A stretch of 63,840 nucleotides of DNA, filler included, from Lenisia limosa (lineage: Eukaryota; Protista; Breviatea): assembly GCA_001655205.1 (NCBI GenBank). It is 11 parts of 11 records of this genome, joined end to end, with 100 filler letters (N's around TTAATTAATTAA, not from the genome) between each part and the next. Parts side by side here need not be neighbours in the genome. Positions count along the whole stretch, not along the records: positions 1 to 9,199 come from LPNZ01005552.1; 10 more parts are not named here. One strand, given 5' to 3'. Positions 31-13,300 of this stretch are shown here, piece by piece (within the stretch, counting starts at the first letter, position 1; each line of letters starts with the position of its first letter). The notes beneath the pieces are model-generated. The model had not been told where the DNA came from. It saw only the letters and a list, made by a program, of their open reading frames with translations, and did not search any database. A program made the translations under genes and the position numbers.

Positions 31-3000
31 TCACAACCTCGCACCCTTTCGTAAGCTGCCGAGCGGAGGGATGGACTTTGTCCCCGGGGTTTGCTTTGGA
101 GGTAGCAAAGTGTGTTTGAGCAAGGCTTGTGAGTCCTTGAGGAGTGTCTCCGGTACCTGCCGAAATCAACCAATTAATAATCCGCATTTAGCACAAATAG
201 ACCAGGAAAGTTGAGACACCGTTCGCAAAGTGTCCACAAGAAGGCAAAGCTGGAGTGGGCTATACCCGACAATTACATCAGTTCCCATTGCTATTGTTAT
301 AATACATGGCCAACTCATCTTCCTCTTCCCACCGAATCCGAAACTGAGATGGGTGAAAACGGCACGTATTGGGCTGCGGCCGAAATATGCTGTGGCAGGA
401 TATGGTCTGGCAACTTGGTTACTTGCGAGAACCCCGTCTGCATTGTCAAAGTTGCAAAGGGAGAATATCACACGAAATGAGAAATAAAAAAAATAAGGTT
501 GTATCTTGCCGAAGCCTTCCACACCATCACGCTTTTAAGAGATATTGGATTATAGTATACTATTAATTCACCCTGTTATTTGCCTGACAACTCTGTGTAG
601 CTTTCTGTGTGCCGTGAATATCGTACGTAGAAATGAGAAAAGAAATGGAGAATCTGACCGAAGAGATACTGGTACCACCCCCATTCCCACTTCTATACCC
701 GGCGTGGAGTAAGTTCTTGGTCGGTTCTGCTCGGTCTTGGCGATGTCCTCGAGGACCCTGCTGGATGGACGGCTCGGCGGCCGTGACACTTTCAGCTTCG
801 TTGAGTTGAAGGACAGTCTATAACCATAACAGAATAGGACACAGTTTGGTATATCAGGCTAAAGCCGTAAAAAATAGGATCAAATGCGCTATATTTAAAA
901 TAATATCTTGATACTTTCACCTCATCAACTCTCAATAAATGAATAAAAACAAACATCGACGACCGATACGCACTTTTTGAGAGGGACAACCTTGACATTG
1001 TTTAATGATACCATGGGGGTGGGCGATGGCGATTTGTGTTGGTACAGCGATGATGGGGACCGAGGGGTGACGGGCTAAAGAAGTCAGAACTGATGGTTAG
1101 GAATCTCGATAAATCCTCGATAAATATCAATGTTTTTTCAGTCTGTTGGAACCGAAAGTGAATCTACAAGATACCACCTGTATTTCAGATTTCTACATAT
1201 TATTTTGGGAACACTCTGCATACTAAGTCGACAGGCTGACTGGACATTGACGAGATCGAACGGAGGGACTGGGTGCTTTCCTTATACGGTGTGCAGAGGG
1301 AGTGGACTTGAATGGGTTCGACAGGGGGCAAAGCTGAAGACTGTCCCATTCCAGATGGTACGGGGTTGAACATTTCTTCCTCACCAGGGGGCTGTACGTA
1401 AAATCAGGAAATTCGAAGCAAAACTTGTCGCAAAACCAATGTATTTACTTGAATTTGGCAAAACCTTGTTCTAGGTTCACGTAATATATCTTTTCATCAT
1501 TTCGGTCATTTTGAGTGAAGCCGTAAACGTCGCCTATCCACCACACATGACTAGCAACCTACGGAAAGGGGGGCAGAAGTTGGGGCGGCAGTCAGGGCAA
1601 CATGGGGACAAAAGGGGTCATTACTGATGGAAGGAATTAACAATAGCGATTCTCATAACTCAGATGAAATGCTCAAATCATATTGTGTTAATGAAGAAAT
1701 AAAATCATAATATGTGTGAATCCAACCTAGTTCTTAGGAAGTACTGAAGAAGCACCACGAGGCATTTGCTTTGGTTGTTTTCTTGCGACCCTACCACTAT
1801 CGTTGTTGCTGGTACTTGTTAAATACTTACCAATCAGGTTGTTAAAACCAATAATCCCCCAGCTCTCTGTGCCAAATCTACCATAATATGCCATACATAA
1901 CCCCAACAACCTATTTTGTTTTTCATGATGCCCGCGCCTCCTCCGCAGAGACCCCTCCAAATCCCCCGACATGCAGGGATACAGCTCCAGTTCATGGGGG
2001 CGACTGCCTGGGGGGGGGGGGGNNNNNNNNNNNNNNNNNNNNNNNNNNNNNNNNNNNNNNNNNNNNNNNNNNNNNNNNNNNNNNNNNNNNNNNNNNNNNN
2101 NNNNNNNNNNNNNNNNNNNNNNNNNGTCTTCCCCTCCAACAGAGAAAAACTCAGCAGATGCGGATGAATTTTCACTTACAAGCTTCTTGGTATCTAAAAT
2201 CTTGTTATATGTTGCTATAATGAATCATATAAATTAAAGTAGCACTATATACTGTTGCATGCGGTCTCCACTAGTTGATAGGTAATAGTATTGAATTACA
2301 CTGCTGACCCTTCCTACCACTTATACCCCCCTCCCCAACCATCATTTTGCTTTGAAAGGGACTGGACAGCGTTCGACACCCACCCAAGATGGAGCATTAG
2401 AAAGGCCGAAAGCGCTCGAGACAGAAAACTAGGTTAAAACAACAAAGAACTTGGGGTCCTTCTCCATGAATGCCAAGAGGATTTCGAGGAAAGCAGCAGC
2501 AGACGCGGCGCGGGTCGGCCTAATTAGCCCGGGCTTGGCATAGAGGGCGGCCCAATTCTCAGACTCTGACATCCCCGCGTTGCAATTAAATTCAAACTCC
2601 GTCACGGGTTGGAAAGCATGGAACGAGAATATCGGTGATATTCTGGGGGTACTGATCAACTGCATCGCATTGTGTCTGGAAATATGAGGCTCTTGGATTT
2701 TGATAATCGGAAATTGATGAATATACTTGTATTATCCTTTTGATCCTCCATACTTAGCCTTCTGACACGCCTGCTCCACCGCAGCCTGTTTGAAGTTATA
2801 GTGAAAGGGCCGTGCAGACGGCAGTGAATGGTTCTCGGCAACATGGAGGAGACACTCGGTGTTGATGCTGGTCACAATGGATTGGACGCAAATCTCCAAC
2901 AGAGGAACGAGGACTGAGAAAAGCGGGCCAAATGTGCCGACCTAAGGGACTGTCAATGGGGGGGGGAATTGTTACAGGTTTTGCCTTGAGCAAAAAAAGG

Positions 3001-5125
3001 TCTTTTCCCTGAAATTCAAGTTTCTCATTATCCTGGGTTGGTATTTAGGAATTCACTTTCGTAAAAATATAGACATAATTTCTCGACCACTCCTCGAAAA
3101 CTATCGATTATGGGCTAAAGTGAAGCACTTATTGTAGTCTTAAGCTCTTCCGAACAATATTGCATTGTCCAGCATACCTTCTCCTCAGGTACTGTGAAGT
3201 GGATGCTCACAGCAAAGACGGCTGTTTTTCGAGGTTGTGGCGAAGGGGGTGAAAACGAGTCTGACCCGATAGTCGCGCTGCGGTTGCGTATCCTGCTGGG
3301 GGGGTGAGACGGAGGAGTGGTGGTGAATGTCATCCTTATTATTGGCCATTGACACCCCCATTTGGTTTACCCCAATTNNNNNNNNNNNNNNNNNNNNNNN
3401 NNNNNNNNNNNNNNNNNNNNNNNNNNNNNNNNNNNNNNNNNNNNNNNNNNNNNNNNAATAAAATATGTTACTTTTGATGACAAGAAATTAGAGAATGGTG
3501 AATACTGAAGAAATAAAATCCAGCAGAAAGCAAACAAAAATAATAATAAGAACCCACCTTTTATTGGGGGTACGCACAAATTGTGGTGATTTCTCGTTTG
3601 CCATTTTCGAAAGAGCAGGGGAAGAGGGCACCCGGGGAACCGGCTTTGTTTTGGGCGAAACATTACCAGGAGAATCACCTGATTTACTTGGGGGTCCATG
3701 GACCACAAAAAGGTGAGAGAGCAGAAACCCTCCTTTAGAAGAGAGATAATGGACTTTGGATGACGAAGTCTTAATGGCTCCGGCGGCGGCACCCCAAACA
3801 CACTCCTCAATTTCTCGAGGACCAGAGAGAGCGGGGGCTTTGGTGGGGGTTGTGGGGTTCTGTTTGGTAATTCGTGAGGGTGCAATAGACATGACGCTCC
3901 TAACAAGGGATTTCTAGTCGATGCATATCATATTGATATCATGAGACATATCATAATAAATCATATCAATCCCACAGAGAGATGAGAAATAAAACAAGAT
4001 TATATCTGACCGAAGCCGTCCACACCATCAAGCATATATATACAGTGTATATTATAGTATCACATCATTCGCTGGCAACTCTGTGCACACAGCATTCTGT
4101 GTGCCTTTCCAACATACACATATAAATACACATACTATATCATAACAAAAAAGATCTTTTATGATACCCCCAGAAGTTATCCCCCCTATATAAGATCACC
4201 ACCCACCCTGAGAGGGGACGCCCTCAATCCGTTCCGGGTGATAGTACTGCCCCTGCGTCTTCGCGAAGCTGGAGTGCCGGGAGATGCGGCGCCGGGAGTC
4301 TTGGTTGTCGGACTGTTTGATGACCTCAGGGGAGTTCCGTCTAAAATCGTAAATAGGACAATCTATGAGAGATGATGTCAAACTCATTAATATGCGTTAC
4401 ACTGTTTATCTTGAGATGTGGTAAAGAGGTTTATCTAGTAATCAATGCGTTCAATATTTCCTTGTTGGCTTTCCAGCCAACTTTCAGAAATGGGGTGAAG
4501 CTCCGAATTGAAGTTTCCGTCATAGACAAGTACATGATTGCATGAACTGTCTTCCTGCCAAATCTGGTAGATAATTGAAAGTCTAAGAATAAAACGTAAT
4601 TGATAATGCAAACCTAGATAATTCCTGTTGGAGTATTTTTTATTTATTCATGGGAGATTGAGGGTAGGAGAGAACCAAAATTCAAAAAGGAGAGTGAAAT
4701 GGTAAAATCCAGCAGGAAGTAAAAATCAATTTATACCAAGAAATGGCCACACCCCTTCCTCACAAGAAACCCTAAGCAAGGACCCATACCCTACAAGGAT
4801 TCGAATGTCTTTCTCGGATAGTGTTGAGTAGGCTGCCGTGTCTCTATATGGCAGTTAGGAATGGATGACGTCCAATTCATAGATCATAATAGAACGAGTA
4901 TGCTCCTGCCATATCAATTCATAGATCATAATATAACGAGTATGCTCCTGCCATATCAATTATTTGAACTTGGCCCCAATAAAAAATACAGGGGAAATGC
5001 AATGAAATGAAGTGCAGAAGGTTATGGGGAAATGCTCATGAAGTGAAGTGCATTACAACAAACAATTTTGGGAACTCGATGACAGGCTTTGGCTTCTTGA
5101 AGAGAGAAATAAGCTTAGGGAACAT
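31..5125 (-). CDS. FNIP: Folliculin-interacting protein (FNIP1/2 / Lst4)-like, multi-exon
   Basis: Exons read by eye match FNIP blocks in order: MFPKLISLFKK (ATG 5125); SEKDIRILV; IEECVWGAAAGAIKTSSSKVHYLSSKGGFLLSHLF (cf. EMMFGSVAMSYKGSTLKIH..QLMLSKVF); LISTPRISPIF; LSRALSAFLMLHLGWV (cf. LPALITAVLTNHLAWV); TTIVVGSQE..VLLQYFLR (cf. RTVVVGK..LLYFLTYFIR). The 3' end is uncertain. Confidence 0.8.
475..613 (+). repeat. Element X copy (unclassified ~130-bp structured dispersed element), FNIP intron
   Basis: AAATGAGAAATAAAAAAAATAAGGTTGTATCTTGCCGAAGCCTTCCACACCATCACGC...TTTGCCTGACAACTCTG..AGCTTTCTGTGTGCC; the same blocks recur about 11 times in the window. Confidence 0.9.
3043..3131. mobile_element. 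Decayed hAT-type MITE copy
   Basis: TAGGAATTCACTTT...TTTCTCGA..CCTCGAAAACTATCGAT...AAAGTGAAGCACTTA resembles the intact copies at 22.8-25.8 kb; another relic lies at ~1095-1168. Confidence 0.55.
3982..4105 (+). repeat. Element X copy, FNIP intron
   Basis: ATGAGAAATAAAA..ATCTGACCGAAGCCGTCCACACCATCA...GGCAACTCTGT GCACACAG-CATT-CTGTGTGC (perfect 8-bp hairpin). Confidence 0.9.
4873..4961. repeat. 42-bp tandem duplication (x2) in intron
   Basis: CAATTCATAGATCATAATA(G/T)AACGAGTATGCTCCTGCCATAT twice, one mismatch. Confidence 0.95.
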
Positions 5126-5616: not shown

Positions 5617-8600
5617 TCAACTCAGAAGGGCTCCATGTGGGGCTGCGAGTCGAAGCGTCAACCAAACCTGACGCACCAGTTCCTTATGTGGGTTGGCTCA
5701 GTTCCTATCTGGATTGGCCCAGATCCTTCTGTGGATTGGCTGAGGTACTTATGTGGTTGGCTTGTGTTTCCTCTTGCTTTAATTGTCTTATGGGTTGTTC
5801 ACTTCCTCAACTTCCTTCCCTTTCTTTCTTGTTTCTCTTGTCCTTTTTTGCGTTTTTTTTTTGATGGGTCCTTTTTTTTATGGAACAAGATGAATAGTCG
5901 ATTATTTTAAATCAACTTGAAGCATGGGTTTGAACGTCACGGTGTAGTCCGTGGTTGCCGCATTGACTGCGAAGGTAAACGAACTCCGATGCTCAATTCC
6001 TCCTTCCGGTAGGCTAGAGTATGAGTGTAACAGGATGGTCTGATGCTCAATTCCTCCTTCCGGTAGGCTTGAGTATGAGTGTGACAGGATGGTCTGGTGT
6101 AATTGGATGGTCTGGTGTAATTGGATCTGTATACTTTTTTCCCCATTGCCTTTTAATCGGTGTGTGTGTTGTATTACTTGATTTTCATATTTTTGGTGTT
6201 CACATAAGAAAAGGGTAGTACAAACATAATACCAAAACTAGTCCTGTCTAAACACCAGGATACACCAACTGCGTGGCTGCCCCGGATAAGATCGGAGTCC
6301 TGGAGACTTGTGAGGTACCGATCTCTCTGTTGACCCCTGGTAGATTCGCTGTCGGCAACACGGGGGTATGCTGGGAACATATTAACAAGGTCAAAGTGTG
6401 TTGTTCTTTTTCTGACCCCATTTCCCGCCACAGTTGGGAGAATATACGTACATATTATATCATATACTATTTAAAAAGTAGATAAGAACATTAATAACTA
6501 GATATTGATATATCAACGTACCATGGCATATAGTATTGCTGGGGAGGTACACAGAAAGCTATGTGCACAGAGTTGTAAAGCAAATGATTGGGTGAGTTAT
6601 ACTACAATTCAATATCTCTTATAAGTATGATGGTGTGGACGACTTCGGCCAGATACAACCTTATTTTTTAATTCTCAATGCTTGATATTATACCACTAGC
6701 TATACTGTCTTGTATCAGAGCTACTGACCGACGATATCGCCCCTTCACCCGCGTAACGAAGTGTAGGGAACCGCCATTTGCACTGACGGAACATGGAAAT
6801 TGGACAACTCCACTAATATCGGTGAGATTCTGTCGATGTCACTTTGGCACTTTTAAAGGAAATGAGAAATATGAAATAGGGACTATCTGGTCGCTCTTTT
6901 ATCGTAATCACGAAAGGAGCTTGGTCAAACCCTGATTTGTGTTGTATATTATATAATTTGATTAATTTCTTTTTGACAGTTGATTTGGGCATTGTTTTGT
7001 TTTATATAGTATGTAAATTTTCCAATTTTACTCCCCCCCCCCCCTTCAGGTCAGAATTGTCGGGACATTGTCGCTCTGGGCTATCCAGATGGAGAATATG
7101 TTATCGCAATTGAGGGAACAAGTCCCACTGGTAGGCCCTATCTTCAACCAATGTCCTTCATACGCATGGTGTGGTTCCATTGGTAGTACGCTGGAGTGAT
7201 GAGATGTGATGCTGCAGGGGGAGCTTTTTCAAAGCCCTAATGCTATTATGCCCCTCAGCTTAATATTTTTTATAGTAACCTTTGACTTGTGCCCATTTGT
7301 TTTGTTTTTTGTGCTGTTGTTTCGATTTCAATGTTTGCTGTATGTGTGTTTGTTTTGTTTTGTGCTTTACCCAGCCAACCCTTTTTTTGTACCATTACTA
7401 CTTTTTTTGCTCAGCATCAGTATGGTTGAGAATAGTCATAGTTTACTTGACACCATATTGTTCGTACCTGTGGAGATTCTTTTCTGCAGTCTGGTCTGGT
7501 CCGCGCTCTGTCCATCCAGCTTTGATCCCCTCGGGGGTCGTATGCTTGGGACGGCTCTAAGCGTTATAATTGGATTGTGACCGTTAATAAGTCGGATCTT
7601 CAACATTTATCTTACTTTTTAACGCCTTACAGGTACGTTTGGGTGATCGATCGGTGGTGGGACTCTTCAAAGGCGGGCTCGGGCTTGTTCTTGTTTTTGT
7701 GTTTTTGTCATCTGGCTTTGTCAAGTTTTAGCGTTGGTTGCTCATGTTTGTTGTTGCTTGTTTTTTGTTTTTTATTTGTTTGGAGTTTCAGATTATTCGG
7801 TTCGTGATTAGTACCTTTACGCCAATATTCTTCGCACAATTTCCTTCGCTTTTTACTCACCCCACCCCCATATCAATTATTAACTGCACAGCGCTTTTGT
7901 ACGTTGAGTGTATGCAACTTGACGCCGAACGTGAGAAGGATACTGGGAGACAGGGAGGGGGAGAGGCTCTCCTATATGTTTAGCTTACCTCCTTTAATCC
8001 AAGTTGAAGATTACTGAACTAAAATTGCATTAAAATTTGAAATTTGTTCATCTTCCGCAACCTTTTCCGCGTATTTGATCTTCTATATTTACCATTTACA
8101 GGCGGGTGGATGCAGATTCGACCGGAAAGCATGGACAGCGCAATCGCCTCAACTTATACTTGCGACATAGCCACCATTCCTTCCACTGGTGGGTGGGGTG
8201 CTGGTGGAAAGAAGAGGAATTTTCAATTTTTGACATCATTATCTTGAGGTTGCGGTTCACTGTCACATGGCATTGCAGCAAGGTTGTCAAGTAAACGTGA
8301 TTTTTTCTTTCGTATTTCTTCCATAGGCCATAACAGAAACGACCTACCTATTTTCCTCATAACTGTAGTGATTTGGGTGCTTAGTTTAGATCAAGTATTT
8401 TTGCATTTTTGGTTTTCGAACTTTGTAACTTACTTTTCAGGAGTATTCTCCTACCGTTGCAACCCGAGCGCAGAGCCTGCCCGACCAAGCCATTGTGGTT
8501 GTACTATGCACCTCAAGTACAAGATCCCTATCATGAGTTGGAATGGGCGGGGAAACATGCTGCCTAGTGTTTTACATACCCGCATTTGATTCTGTCAATT

Positions 8601-10342: not shown

Positions 10343-13300
10343 ATGCTCCGCTTGTTTTTCCTTTTACTGGTAACAACTTTTGCCTTTGCCTCTGAACGTA
10401 AGTTCACTGAAGGATGCAAAATGGTAAGGGGTGGGGGGTTGGGTGCCTGGGAGCTTGAGGGAAATACCTGTTCCAATTTAATTGGCGATTCAACTAATCG
10501 CACCTCTTCCCTTCATCCTTATGTTTGTTTTTCTTTCTCATCATTATTCAAGGCTGATGGAGCCGAAGCGTTCTGCGAAGATGGGTTGTCACATTTGAGC
10601 CTTCCAGATGGTGGGTCAGTCACTTTGAAACTCGGTTTTCTGACCCGTCAATTCATTCTGAAATAGTGATTAGTAAAAATGTGTAGTCGATGATTTGTTA
10701 TTAAATACCAAAAAAAAAAGTTAAATTTAAACCTAAGAATTGGAGTTGCTCATAATTTGTCCTTTGATTCATTCTTGCACCCTTTCACTCTTAGATGATG
10801 TGGTGGAAGTTGTGCTTCTTCGTGCCCCCGTAGGCTACAGGACCAGGGGAACTTTTTTTTTTTTTTTAACCCAATTTAATATTTTTTATTTTTTCTACCA
10901 ACAGAGGAATTCTAGTTTAACCCGAAGTAGCTCTTCAAGGCCAAGCTCGGACCGGTTCTTGCCAAGTTCGACCTTTACCATGCTGGTGTTGGGTTCATTT
11001 CGAAGAAAACAGGCCGATCATATGACGTTGACTTTGGTAAGTAGAGCGGATGTAGATTTGCTGCATTTTTTATTATATGGGCTTCACTTTAGTATGATTT
11101 TCTCGATAAATCCTCTCTGAATTTAAAATTGAAAATCCCATTCCAGTTTCAACTGTGGAGCATTTTCACCCTTACCCTCCCTCTAGTGGCAGTGTTTGAT
11201 ATGGTGGCATCCGTGTACCCGAACTATACTTCTTCGGGACAAGAGCTTTGGTGCAATGATGGTCTGATTTTGAGAAGGGAAGAATACCGTTGTTGATCTA
11301 ATAGTCTTTTTTTTTTGTTTGTTATAGCGACTGATCTGGGCTTTGTTTTGCAGCTTTCAAGTTTGTACTGGTAGTTGCAGATTATTCGACTCGTGATTAT
11401 TTTTTGCAAATATTCTTCCTCGAAATCTTATTCACTTTACCCCCCCCCCCCTTCCNNNNNNNNNNNNNNNNNNNNNNNNNNNNNNNNNNNNNNNNNNNNN
11501 NNNNNNNNNNNNNNNNNNNNNNNNNNNNNNNNNGGGACTATTACGACCACGTAACTGCGCTGACTGGTGCACAATTCAATGAGCTCGAAGTACGATGGGT
11601 TTATCATATTATACATGTTCATCTTCTCCTAGTACTTTGAATAAAAGTATTATATGATCTATATCATGTAGCTATATGATTCTCTCTTATATGATAGTTT
11701 TGACCATGACGAGATTTCCCTTCTTGAAAATTGTTAGACTTTCCACGGTCAGTGTATGTTATATAATCTGTTGTTCTTCTACATTTTCCGATTCCTCAAT
11801 TCAGAGAAATCTTAAAACTAGTAATAAATAAATAGCGGTCATTTCGTCCGTTAATTGTATCTTATCCCCAGGTTTGGCTGAGGGACTTCAACAACACTTA
11901 CACCACTTATGAACTGTTCACTGTGAAGCAAGGCAAGTATGCTGTTCATTTGATCTGGCCGAATCACAAGCTTTTATTGGATACTTTACCTTTCTAGAGA
12001 TGCTCCAGTGGACATTATGGCACACACCTGCTTTGAGTTCGCTTGGCAGGTGTTCAACAAGATTTACGGTGTGATTTCTCAAAATAATTCAGTAATGTGG
12101 CAAATTTGATCGGCAGTTTACTGTAACATATATAATGGGCTGTGGACTTGTCTCTTCTTGGATGTCTTTTGACTCTTTCATCTCCTGCTCCGTCTCTGTA
12201 TCTGTTGGTTTGTTCTAAATGGCATGAAGTAGGGCCCGTGCAATTAATTGAACAATAAATTTCAAAATGCGAAGTCATATTGAATTAAACACAATTCCAG
12301 ACACATTGATTTCTAATTTTGTCAAGTTCTTCATTTATAGGATTAGGGGGTGGTCCATGTTGTCCCCACTCTTGTTGAAAATTGACAACCTAGATCTCGG
12401 AGGTCGATTCTCTCCTGATGAAGTTCTCAGCAAGAACGTGGTGAATCTATTTGCAAGCTCAATTGAGGTTTGACTGGCAATTTGTATTACATAGCTCTCC
12501 GTTTCACTGCTGATCCCCCTTTCAGAAAGTGGATATGACAATCACTGCCAACATCAAGGCTGTCGCTGAGTTCTATGCTGGTCTGGGGGGATAAAATGGT
12601 TTCCAAATAGTTGGGGGTTTGATTTTTGTTTTGCTTTGAAATTACTCTTTGCTTAATCAGCAATATTTTGACAAGTGTTATTAAAAAAATATGATATTAA
12701 AATAATAAATAAAGGAAAATGGATATGATGTTGAACTATTTCAGAAATGGCAAACCACAGTGGTTCACCTGAGGAATTCATTTCCTTCTACAGAGACCTA
12801 GTTGTAGGAATGGGTATTTTGATTTTTGTAGTATTTCCAGCACGTATGATGCCTATTCTCTTTTTTAAGGATTGTATAGTTTCTGTTTTTAATTCATCTT
12901 GTCCCATCCGCGTTTAACTAGATCCACCATTCAAATCGCTGTTCATTTCACAGGAGCTTCCAAAATACCTCTACCATGAGAAGGCCTACTACAAGCTCCA
13001 AGATATGGTGGCACCATTCATCAACTACGACTTCGCCAGGTCACCTCTTCCGGGTCAGCACATTAGCTTCTAGTGTTTACATTTTCGATTATTCTAAGTC
13101 TTCTTGTTCCTGCTCGAAGGAATTGTTGTTATTTATTCTTTCAAAACCTCTCAGTTCGGTAACTCCAGCCAGCTTATCAGAAATCAGGGGTATTTTATGG
13201 AACAATATAGCCTTTAAACAGTTCTACAAGAGCCTCACACGAGGAAACGTCTAAATATGTTAATCTAGCATATTGCAATTGATCTTATCACGTCTTATTT

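Follow-up and report, generated by a model that had tools for sequence, protein, structure and literature searches.

A repeat at positions 475-613 of the window, a 63,840-nt stretch of Lenisia limosa DNA made of 11 joined parts of assembly GCA_001655205.1, had been described as element X, an unclassified structured mobile element or RNA of about 130 bp. We found that X lines up collinearly with the 3' terminus of an element encoding a reverse transcriptase (RT) that is probably Penelope-like. X is most probably a short non-autonomous retroelement that consists solely of the terminal ~155 nt of the 3' untranslated region (UTR) of a Penelope-like element (PLE) of the Naiad/Chlamys type. On this reading it is a new member of a kind that is already known, namely short 3'-end copies of a Naiad/Chlamys-type PLE.

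The genome searched was the source genome (49.0 Mb in 11,727 contigs). Patterns were counted across the whole genome with up to three mismatches, the two patterns from within X against reversed-pattern controls; 32 copies of X were aligned with their flanks, and a local sample of 53 copies was taken from 212 kb. The search with X gave 2669 first-look candidates, and the 40 candidates that were scored were 83-89% identical, nearly all of them covering query positions 12-149, which corresponds to the coordinates originally given for X. A 35-mer from the hairpin end of X (its first 35 nt in RNA sense) had 565 genomic copies and a 35-mer from the UUCG-hairpin core had 1108, with none for either reversed control, confirming that X is abundant. 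Three copies and one ~40-nt fragment lie in the first 9.2-kb piece of the window (Table 1), consistent with the predicted repeat at 475-613 and its further copies, one in the same orientation at 3982-4105 and one in the opposite orientation at 6546-6677. The features by which X had been recognised (three conserved blocks, a variable AT-rich middle, an 8-bp hairpin and a GGC-UUCG-GCC hairpin) are all seen in the 32-copy alignment, and its description as a discrete, abundant mobile element stands. Most copies are single and dispersed; three tandem X 3' fragments were found at C11085. At another locus (L003:1023-1217, G000:C1974), an inverted partial X and the 3' end of a full X are 5 bp apart in a tail-to-tail arrangement, resembling inverted PLE copies.

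The alignment also defined the ends of X. The full unit is ~155 nt rather than ~130 bp: on the strand on which the repeat was originally described, complete copies run from AGCAATGAGAAAT... to ...GCGTGCCTCCCCAGCATA, reaching 10-12 nt past position 613, where copy 1 is itself truncated. On that strand the left end is constant and usually preceded by a TATAT-like sequence, while the right end is ragged, with a stop point that differs between copies. One constant left end and one ragged right end are what a 5'-truncated retroposed RNA looks like, so the RNA sense of X is the reverse complement of the originally described strand. This one-sided raggedness agrees with the earlier suggestion that X is best read on the opposite strand, and RNA sense is used below unless stated otherwise.

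At the insertion sites, the constant 3' end of X (...CTCATTGCT) is followed by 0-16 mostly TA-rich extra bases before the target-site duplication (TSD), and the 3' flank begins with ATAT in about half of the copies. The longest word common to both 30-nt flanks was at least 8 nt in 8 of 33 copies, compared with 4.8% of shuffled flank pairings, and the mean length of the shared word was 5.7 nt for the real flanks versus 3.7 nt for the shuffled pairings. In clear cases the TSD is 6-17 bp long and lies directly against the variable 5' end of X. It had been stated that X has no consistent short TSD; TSDs of varying length are in fact present and enriched. X has three hallmarks of retroposition: TSDs that vary in length, truncated 5' ends and a 3' end that it has in common with an autonomous partner.

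The partner was found by following X beyond its ragged end. Five of the 32 aligned copies run past this end into one common sequence, for which a search gave 1439 first-look candidates with an 801-nt query that also included locus-specific flank. Pairwise comparison of longer copies showed homology beyond X for 352, 372, ~560, 713, 893, ~1130 and at least 1340 nt, each with its own stop point, and the 53 local copies are between 35 and 2463 nt long, counted from the constant 3' end. Collinearity places X at the 3' end of a decayed element of ~3 kb, in which ~600 nt of 3' UTR lie between the RT and the end of the element, X being the last part. The original prediction had called for a search for longer copies that share both ends and carry a Rep/Hel, Y1, TnpB/Fanzor or RT open reading frame; the longer copies found here carry a decayed RT reading frame upstream of X on the same strand. 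The motifs read in this frame are LPYLYALPKMHK...RFIAGG (LPK(M)HK..RFIAGG), LPYLYALPKMHKSPISFRFIAGG, YDFSTLYT, GLPMGTNAAPLLANL and RFIDDIL, together with a thumb region ending in ...RYGRLCS. Pfam RVT_1 matches the decayed RT weakly (E 4e-4, below the Pfam cut-off), the protein-atlas clusters nearest to it are from animals and have RVT_1 and HTH_animal domains, and ~62 genomic RT candidates match it. Further RT copies that are 44-54% identical to the X-linked RT occur without X at L068, L065 and L070 (G000:C11431, C10708 and C6074), indicating that the genome contains at least one more PLE-like family that does not end in X.

The features upstream of the RT were read in three copies of the parent element. 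In RNA sense, the order from 5' to 3' is a GIY-YIG-like motif, a KR-rich block, a CxC motif, a DKA-type motif, the RT and the 3' UTR ending in X (Table 1). Naiad and Chlamys elements are characterised by an N-terminal GIY-YIG endonuclease, a KR-rich block, a CxC motif, a DKG motif changed to DKA and a C-terminal RT (Craig, Yushenova, Rodriguez & Arkhipova 2021, PMC8557442). Given the permuted motif order, with both the CxC linker and the DKG-to-DKA change present, the parent most probably belongs to the Naiad/Chlamys type of PLE, an assignment that does not separate Naiad from Chlamys. By tblastn, parent copies are collinear with protein P0097 from residue ~304 to residue 743, and the CxC and DKA-type motifs fall in collinear order within residues 304-580. 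In both P0097 and P0109, Pfam places GIY-YIG at residues 60-156 and the RT is C-terminal, and the parent motif GMLYAIVCSNVRTVYVGQT aligns over 24 residues to the GIY-YIG motif of P0097 (pairwise E 7e-4). For an intact relative, P0006, a word search retrieved 181 homologues, some of them about 770-790 aa long, including P0097 and P0109 with their GIY-YIG plus RT; one named homologue is from a nematode.

The behaviour of the copies agrees with this assignment. Naiads show strong 5' truncation, (TA)n targets, partial tandems, inverted copies and short extensions at the insertion end, and lack a canonical hammerhead ribozyme, which canonical PLEs carry in their pseudo-long terminal repeats (pseudo-LTRs) (PMC8557442). 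The parent element shares with Naiad/Chlamys PLEs the order of the motifs read (the first of them GIY-YIG-like), 5' truncation, TA-rich sites, 3' extensions, partial tandem or inverted copies and absence of a canonical hammerhead; among these, the truncation series, the tandem and inverted copies, the 3' extension and the TA target bias are expected of PLEs, and the absence of a canonical hammerhead from X, the 3' UTR and the RT region is expected of Naiads. Naiads are 3.4-4.4 kb long, whereas the parent appears shorter at ~3.1 kb, the copies read here being decayed.

A genome-wide search with Pfam GIY-YIG gave four matches, none with DNA similarity to the parent element. These are paralogous open frames (L086:1501-1692, L087, L088 and L085) with the motif FxxYxxxS...YIG.T..L.RRL.QHN, and by this motif they look like host genes for an SLX1-like structure-specific endonuclease.

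Whether X is a unit in its own right depends on how copies are distributed around its 5' end. A 35-mer across the junction between X and the upstream sequence had 80 genomic copies, compared with 565 for the first 35 nt of X; of the copies extending as far as the X 5' region, about 86% end inside a stretch of ~25 nt, and about 14% continue upstream. Beyond this boundary the counts hardly drop over the next ~700-1000 nt (80 junctions, ~62 RT candidates). In the local sample, about 19 of the 53 copies end 152-157 nt from the 3' end, forming a pile-up that starts with (G)TATGCTGGGG. So steep a drop, from 565 copies to 80 over ~25 nt, suggests a discrete unit resembling a short interspersed nuclear element (SINE) rather than random truncation, and the simplest reading is that most X copies were made from a ~155-nt template. 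At one site, four of five long copies have GATG, in contrast to about 4 of 27 X-only copies, which mostly have GTTG (one search set); with so few copies, this contrast is no more than suggestive, but it is in line with a discrete unit.

We considered that X copies may instead be randomly 5'-truncated, dead-on-arrival insertions of full-length PLE RNA, with neither a short template nor a SINE-like lineage. Heavy 5' truncation is known for PLEs and typical of them (PMC8557442, PMC8969392), truncation points vary both inside and upstream of X, and the consensus of the X portion is the same in short and long copies save for two neighbouring sites. However, random truncation does not account for a steep step at the X boundary followed by a nearly flat stretch, nor for more than a third of the local copies ending within the same few nucleotides, and we regard it as unlikely. 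A variant in which the RT pauses, or has a preferred joining site, at the X boundary is possible.

If X is a short derivative of the PLE, its amplification could proceed as follows. A ~155-nt RNA containing the 3' recognition region would be used in trans by the PLE RT. The PLE endonuclease would nick TA-rich DNA, and the nicked end would serve as primer for cDNA synthesis, beginning at the 3' end of the RNA or at a TA-rich tail (target-primed reverse transcription), with a staggered second nick giving rise to the TSD. The sharp 5' end of X would most likely correspond to an RNA whose own 5' end is defined. This end may be set by a transcription start ~155 nt before the 3' terminus of the element, much as transcription of PLEs begins within the pseudo-LTR. 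Alternatively, it may reflect a processing or self-cleavage site, or an RT stop or preferred joining point.

Comparable elements have been described. MRC1 and other non-autonomous Chlamys elements of Chlamydomonas are non-autonomous PLE derivatives (PMC8557442), and vertebrate non-LTR retrozymes have been reported as derivatives of PLE pseudo-LTRs (bioRxiv 10.64898/2026.07.22.740005). Like non-autonomous PLE derivatives, X is short and non-coding, has its 3' end in common with an autonomous PLE, presumably moved in trans and is occasionally arranged head-to-tail. Unlike them, it consists of the terminal ~155 nt only, without an unrelated 5' part and without a hammerhead, and occurs mostly as dispersed singles. 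X also resembles SINEs that share the 3' tail of a long interspersed nuclear element (LINE), in that a short RNA would be copied by a partner RT at a nick, with 5' truncation, variable TSDs and thousands of copies compared with tens of partner copies. It differs from them in having a PLE as its partner and in lacking a tRNA, 5S or 7SL head or recognisable polymerase III boxes. No such classical SINE head was found by Rfam on either strand of X, and X, over its entire length, shows collinearity with the PLE 3' UTR. Among the candidates first proposed for X, a SINE or retrozyme-like small RNA thus came close to the truth, while the DNA-based candidates discussed below did not.

X had also been proposed to form a compact RNA-like fold. 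Its RNA does contain an 8-bp hairpin, GCACGCAG-AAAG-CUGUGUGC, and the GGC-UUCG-GCC hairpin. A 158-nt X RNA was nevertheless not more stable than its dinucleotide shuffles (z of -0.69 in RNA sense and +0.81 for the originally described strand), and in the predicted fold the GTTGTA/TACAAC pairing competes with UAAGG/CCUUA. Copies with single mismatches include both stem-breaking changes and wobble-preserving changes that keep the stem, as expected for neutral decay. Rfam was applied permissively to the window and to five loci that together include X, the 3' UTR upstream of it and the RT; no relevant family, hammerhead or other ribozyme was found at E<=10. The folding energies and the empty Rfam scan do not support X as a structured RNA. 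The scan, which the original prediction had asked for, does agree with its statement that X has no hammerhead, tRNA or 5S motif.

These results bear on the proposal that X is a functional structured or self-cleaving RNA, either retrozyme-like or a new ribozyme, whose self-cleavage produces the sharp 5' end. Such a proposal would fit that sharp end, the 8-bp hairpin 13 nt from it and the UUCG hairpin, and it has precedents in the hammerheads of canonical PLE pseudo-LTRs, which Naiads lack, and in the vertebrate retrozymes reported to derive from PLEs. Yet neither X nor its junction matches an Rfam ribozyme family, the fold is no better than that of shuffled sequences, substitutions both break and keep the stems, and the copies are dispersed, whereas retrozymes typically form long tandem arrays; we consider this proposal highly improbable. 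A retrozyme in the strict sense was rejected for its missing hammerhead and for copies that are mostly single and dispersed. A broader version, in which RNA processing encoded by the element (a self-cleaving motif not yet described, or else a defined start within the element) makes the X 5' end in place of a hammerhead, is somewhat less improbable but still quite doubtful; if true, X would be the processed, transposition-competent minimal substrate of the PLE RT. Under the short-derivative reading, the hairpins may well contribute to recognition by the RT.

The only matches in the Rfam scan were chance ones, to snoZ242 and, elsewhere, a MIR319-like palindrome. The latter, at L032:1019-1118, is a near-perfect palindromic hairpin of ~100 nt that is MIR319-like on both strands, with 28.6 bits compared with a gathering threshold of 54; an inverted-repeat element is a likelier identity for it than a microRNA gene.

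The idea that X is the remnant of a DNA transposon (a miniature inverted-repeat transposable element (MITE), a Helitron/Helentron-HINE, or an IS200/IS605 or Fanzor-associated end) draws on the hairpins near one end, the TA-rich flanks and the non-coding short copies, but can be virtually dismissed, as X has no terminal inverted repeats (TIRs), truncation on one side only and TSDs that are variable in length rather than fixed or absent, and its longer copies run on, in the same orientation, into an RT gene. One-sided truncation, variable TSDs and the linked RT together contradict the Helentron/HINE, IS200/IS605-HUH and Fanzor ends that had been listed as candidates. For the Helitron/Helentron-HINE class, the variably truncated end, the TSDs and the RT in longer copies were each grounds for rejection. 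That X is not a MITE and has no TIRs was stated originally and holds in the 32-copy alignment; TSDs that vary from 6 to 17 bp are likewise unlike those of a MITE. No Rep/helicase, Y1 or TnpB was seen beside X in the loci read, although no search aimed at these proteins was made.

Several observations weigh against X being a short derivative of a Naiad/Chlamys-type PLE. The ~155-nt RNA is one that we infer. The X 3' end is preceded, at a distance of 16 nt, by a T6 run that would terminate polymerase III, making this polymerase an unlikely source of the short RNA, and no alternative promoter was identified. On the side of the parent, every copy read is decayed or broken, and the loci read stop short of its 5' terminus and of any pseudo-LTR. 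Pfam GIY-YIG gives no call on the decayed parent fragment, so the endonuclease assignment rests on the 24-residue alignment together with collinearity. Finally, the assembly is biased with respect to X in a way that makes divergence, the share of short copies and the contrasts between subfamilies unreliable.

This bias is apparent from several patterns. A 30-mer at X positions 99-128 has no perfect genomic copy, but 348 copies differ from it by exactly one mismatch. Likewise, 30-nt windows starting at X 76-116 are perfect in 0 of 36 local copies, compared with 7-14 copies for those within the first 50 nt. Of the 99 N-runs in 212 kb, nine cut X in mid-copy (for example, X 1-20, then N, then 125-155), and several contigs begin ~57-63 nt inside X. 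The short-read assembler probably failed to bridge consensus-like copies of X, which collapsed, although collapse alone is not proven as the cause of a completely empty zero-mismatch class. If consensus-like copies were not bridged, the full copies that were assembled are an older, biased sample, the true copy number is underestimated and some of the short copies are cut by gaps. Copies of X diverge by about 7% from the consensus, a figure that is unsuitable for dating given this bias.

Table 1. Positions of X copies in the first piece of the window and of motifs in the parent element
Feature	Position	Strand	Remarks
X copy 1	470..615	- (RNA sense)	matches consensus 13-152; 5'-truncated by ~12 nt; sense 3' end near 473; 85-87% identical to other genomic copies
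Left TSD of X copy 1, GAATATC on + strand	463..469		read in sequence; longest shared flank word
Right TSD of X copy 1, GAATATC on + strand	616..622		longest shared flank word
Degenerate ~40-nt X 3'-end fragment (consensus 115-155)	629..664	-	weak match; probable partial tandem with copy 1
X copy 2	3982..4117	- (RNA sense)	consensus 1-151; older, ~70% identical to reference
X copy 3	6533..6682	+ (RNA sense)	full length, consensus 1-155; ~83% identical
GIY-YIG-like motif 'GMLYAIVCSNVRTVYVGQT...R'	L076:492-995	RNA sense	upstream of CxC and RT
KR-rich block RHRKRKSSSRRN...	between GIY-YIG-like motif and CxC	RNA sense	upstream of RT
CxC motif 'ENCPC(H/Q)LNPDY...CPTSH(C/G)NH'	L075, L076, L077	RNA sense	upstream of RT
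DKA-type motif 'VPVDKASDNFIIFCREHY' ('VPVDKASDNF')	L075, L076, L077	RNA sense	upstream of RT

The fragment next to copy 1 has a local alignment score of 17, compared with a shuffle mean of 9.0, and 0.4% of 500 shuffles reach 17. Judged from this weak sequence match, it is a probable partial tandem, placed head-to-tail just upstream of copy 1 in RNA sense. Two tandem duplications in the window, at 5985-6092 (2 x 54 bp, 94% identical) and 4873-4956 (2 x 42 bp, 98% identical), are unrelated to X.

Two further sequences were noted at other loci. A different repeat of ~110 bp at L051:7744-7856 (G000:C6560, about 11943-12056) abuts the 5'-truncated end of one PLE copy; it has 769 first-look candidates and 93-98% identity between copies, looks young and abundant, and is unclassified. 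An intron-less frame of 258 aa at L072:5510-6283 (- strand) is found in flanking sequence and encodes a GltD/PreT-like oxidoreductase, the nearest named relatives of which are bacterial and at most 59% identical. To go by this similarity, the gene may have been acquired by transfer, or else the host may belong to an unusual lineage.

With at least ~1100 assembled copies, X is a major repeat of the 49-Mb L. limosa genome. The gaps and contig ends inside X indicate that it breaks short-read assembly, and masking it is advisable ahead of gene prediction. What had been an unclassified structured element becomes a repeat that can be annotated, as a short retroelement derived from a PLE, along with its decayed Naiad/Chlamys-type parent. 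X also raises the question of how a short RNA acquires a defined 5' end in a clade of PLEs that is free of hammerheads. If most copies indeed stem from a short template, a PLE 3' end of ~155 nt would suffice for mass amplification, which would delimit the recognition signal of a telomerase-related RT.

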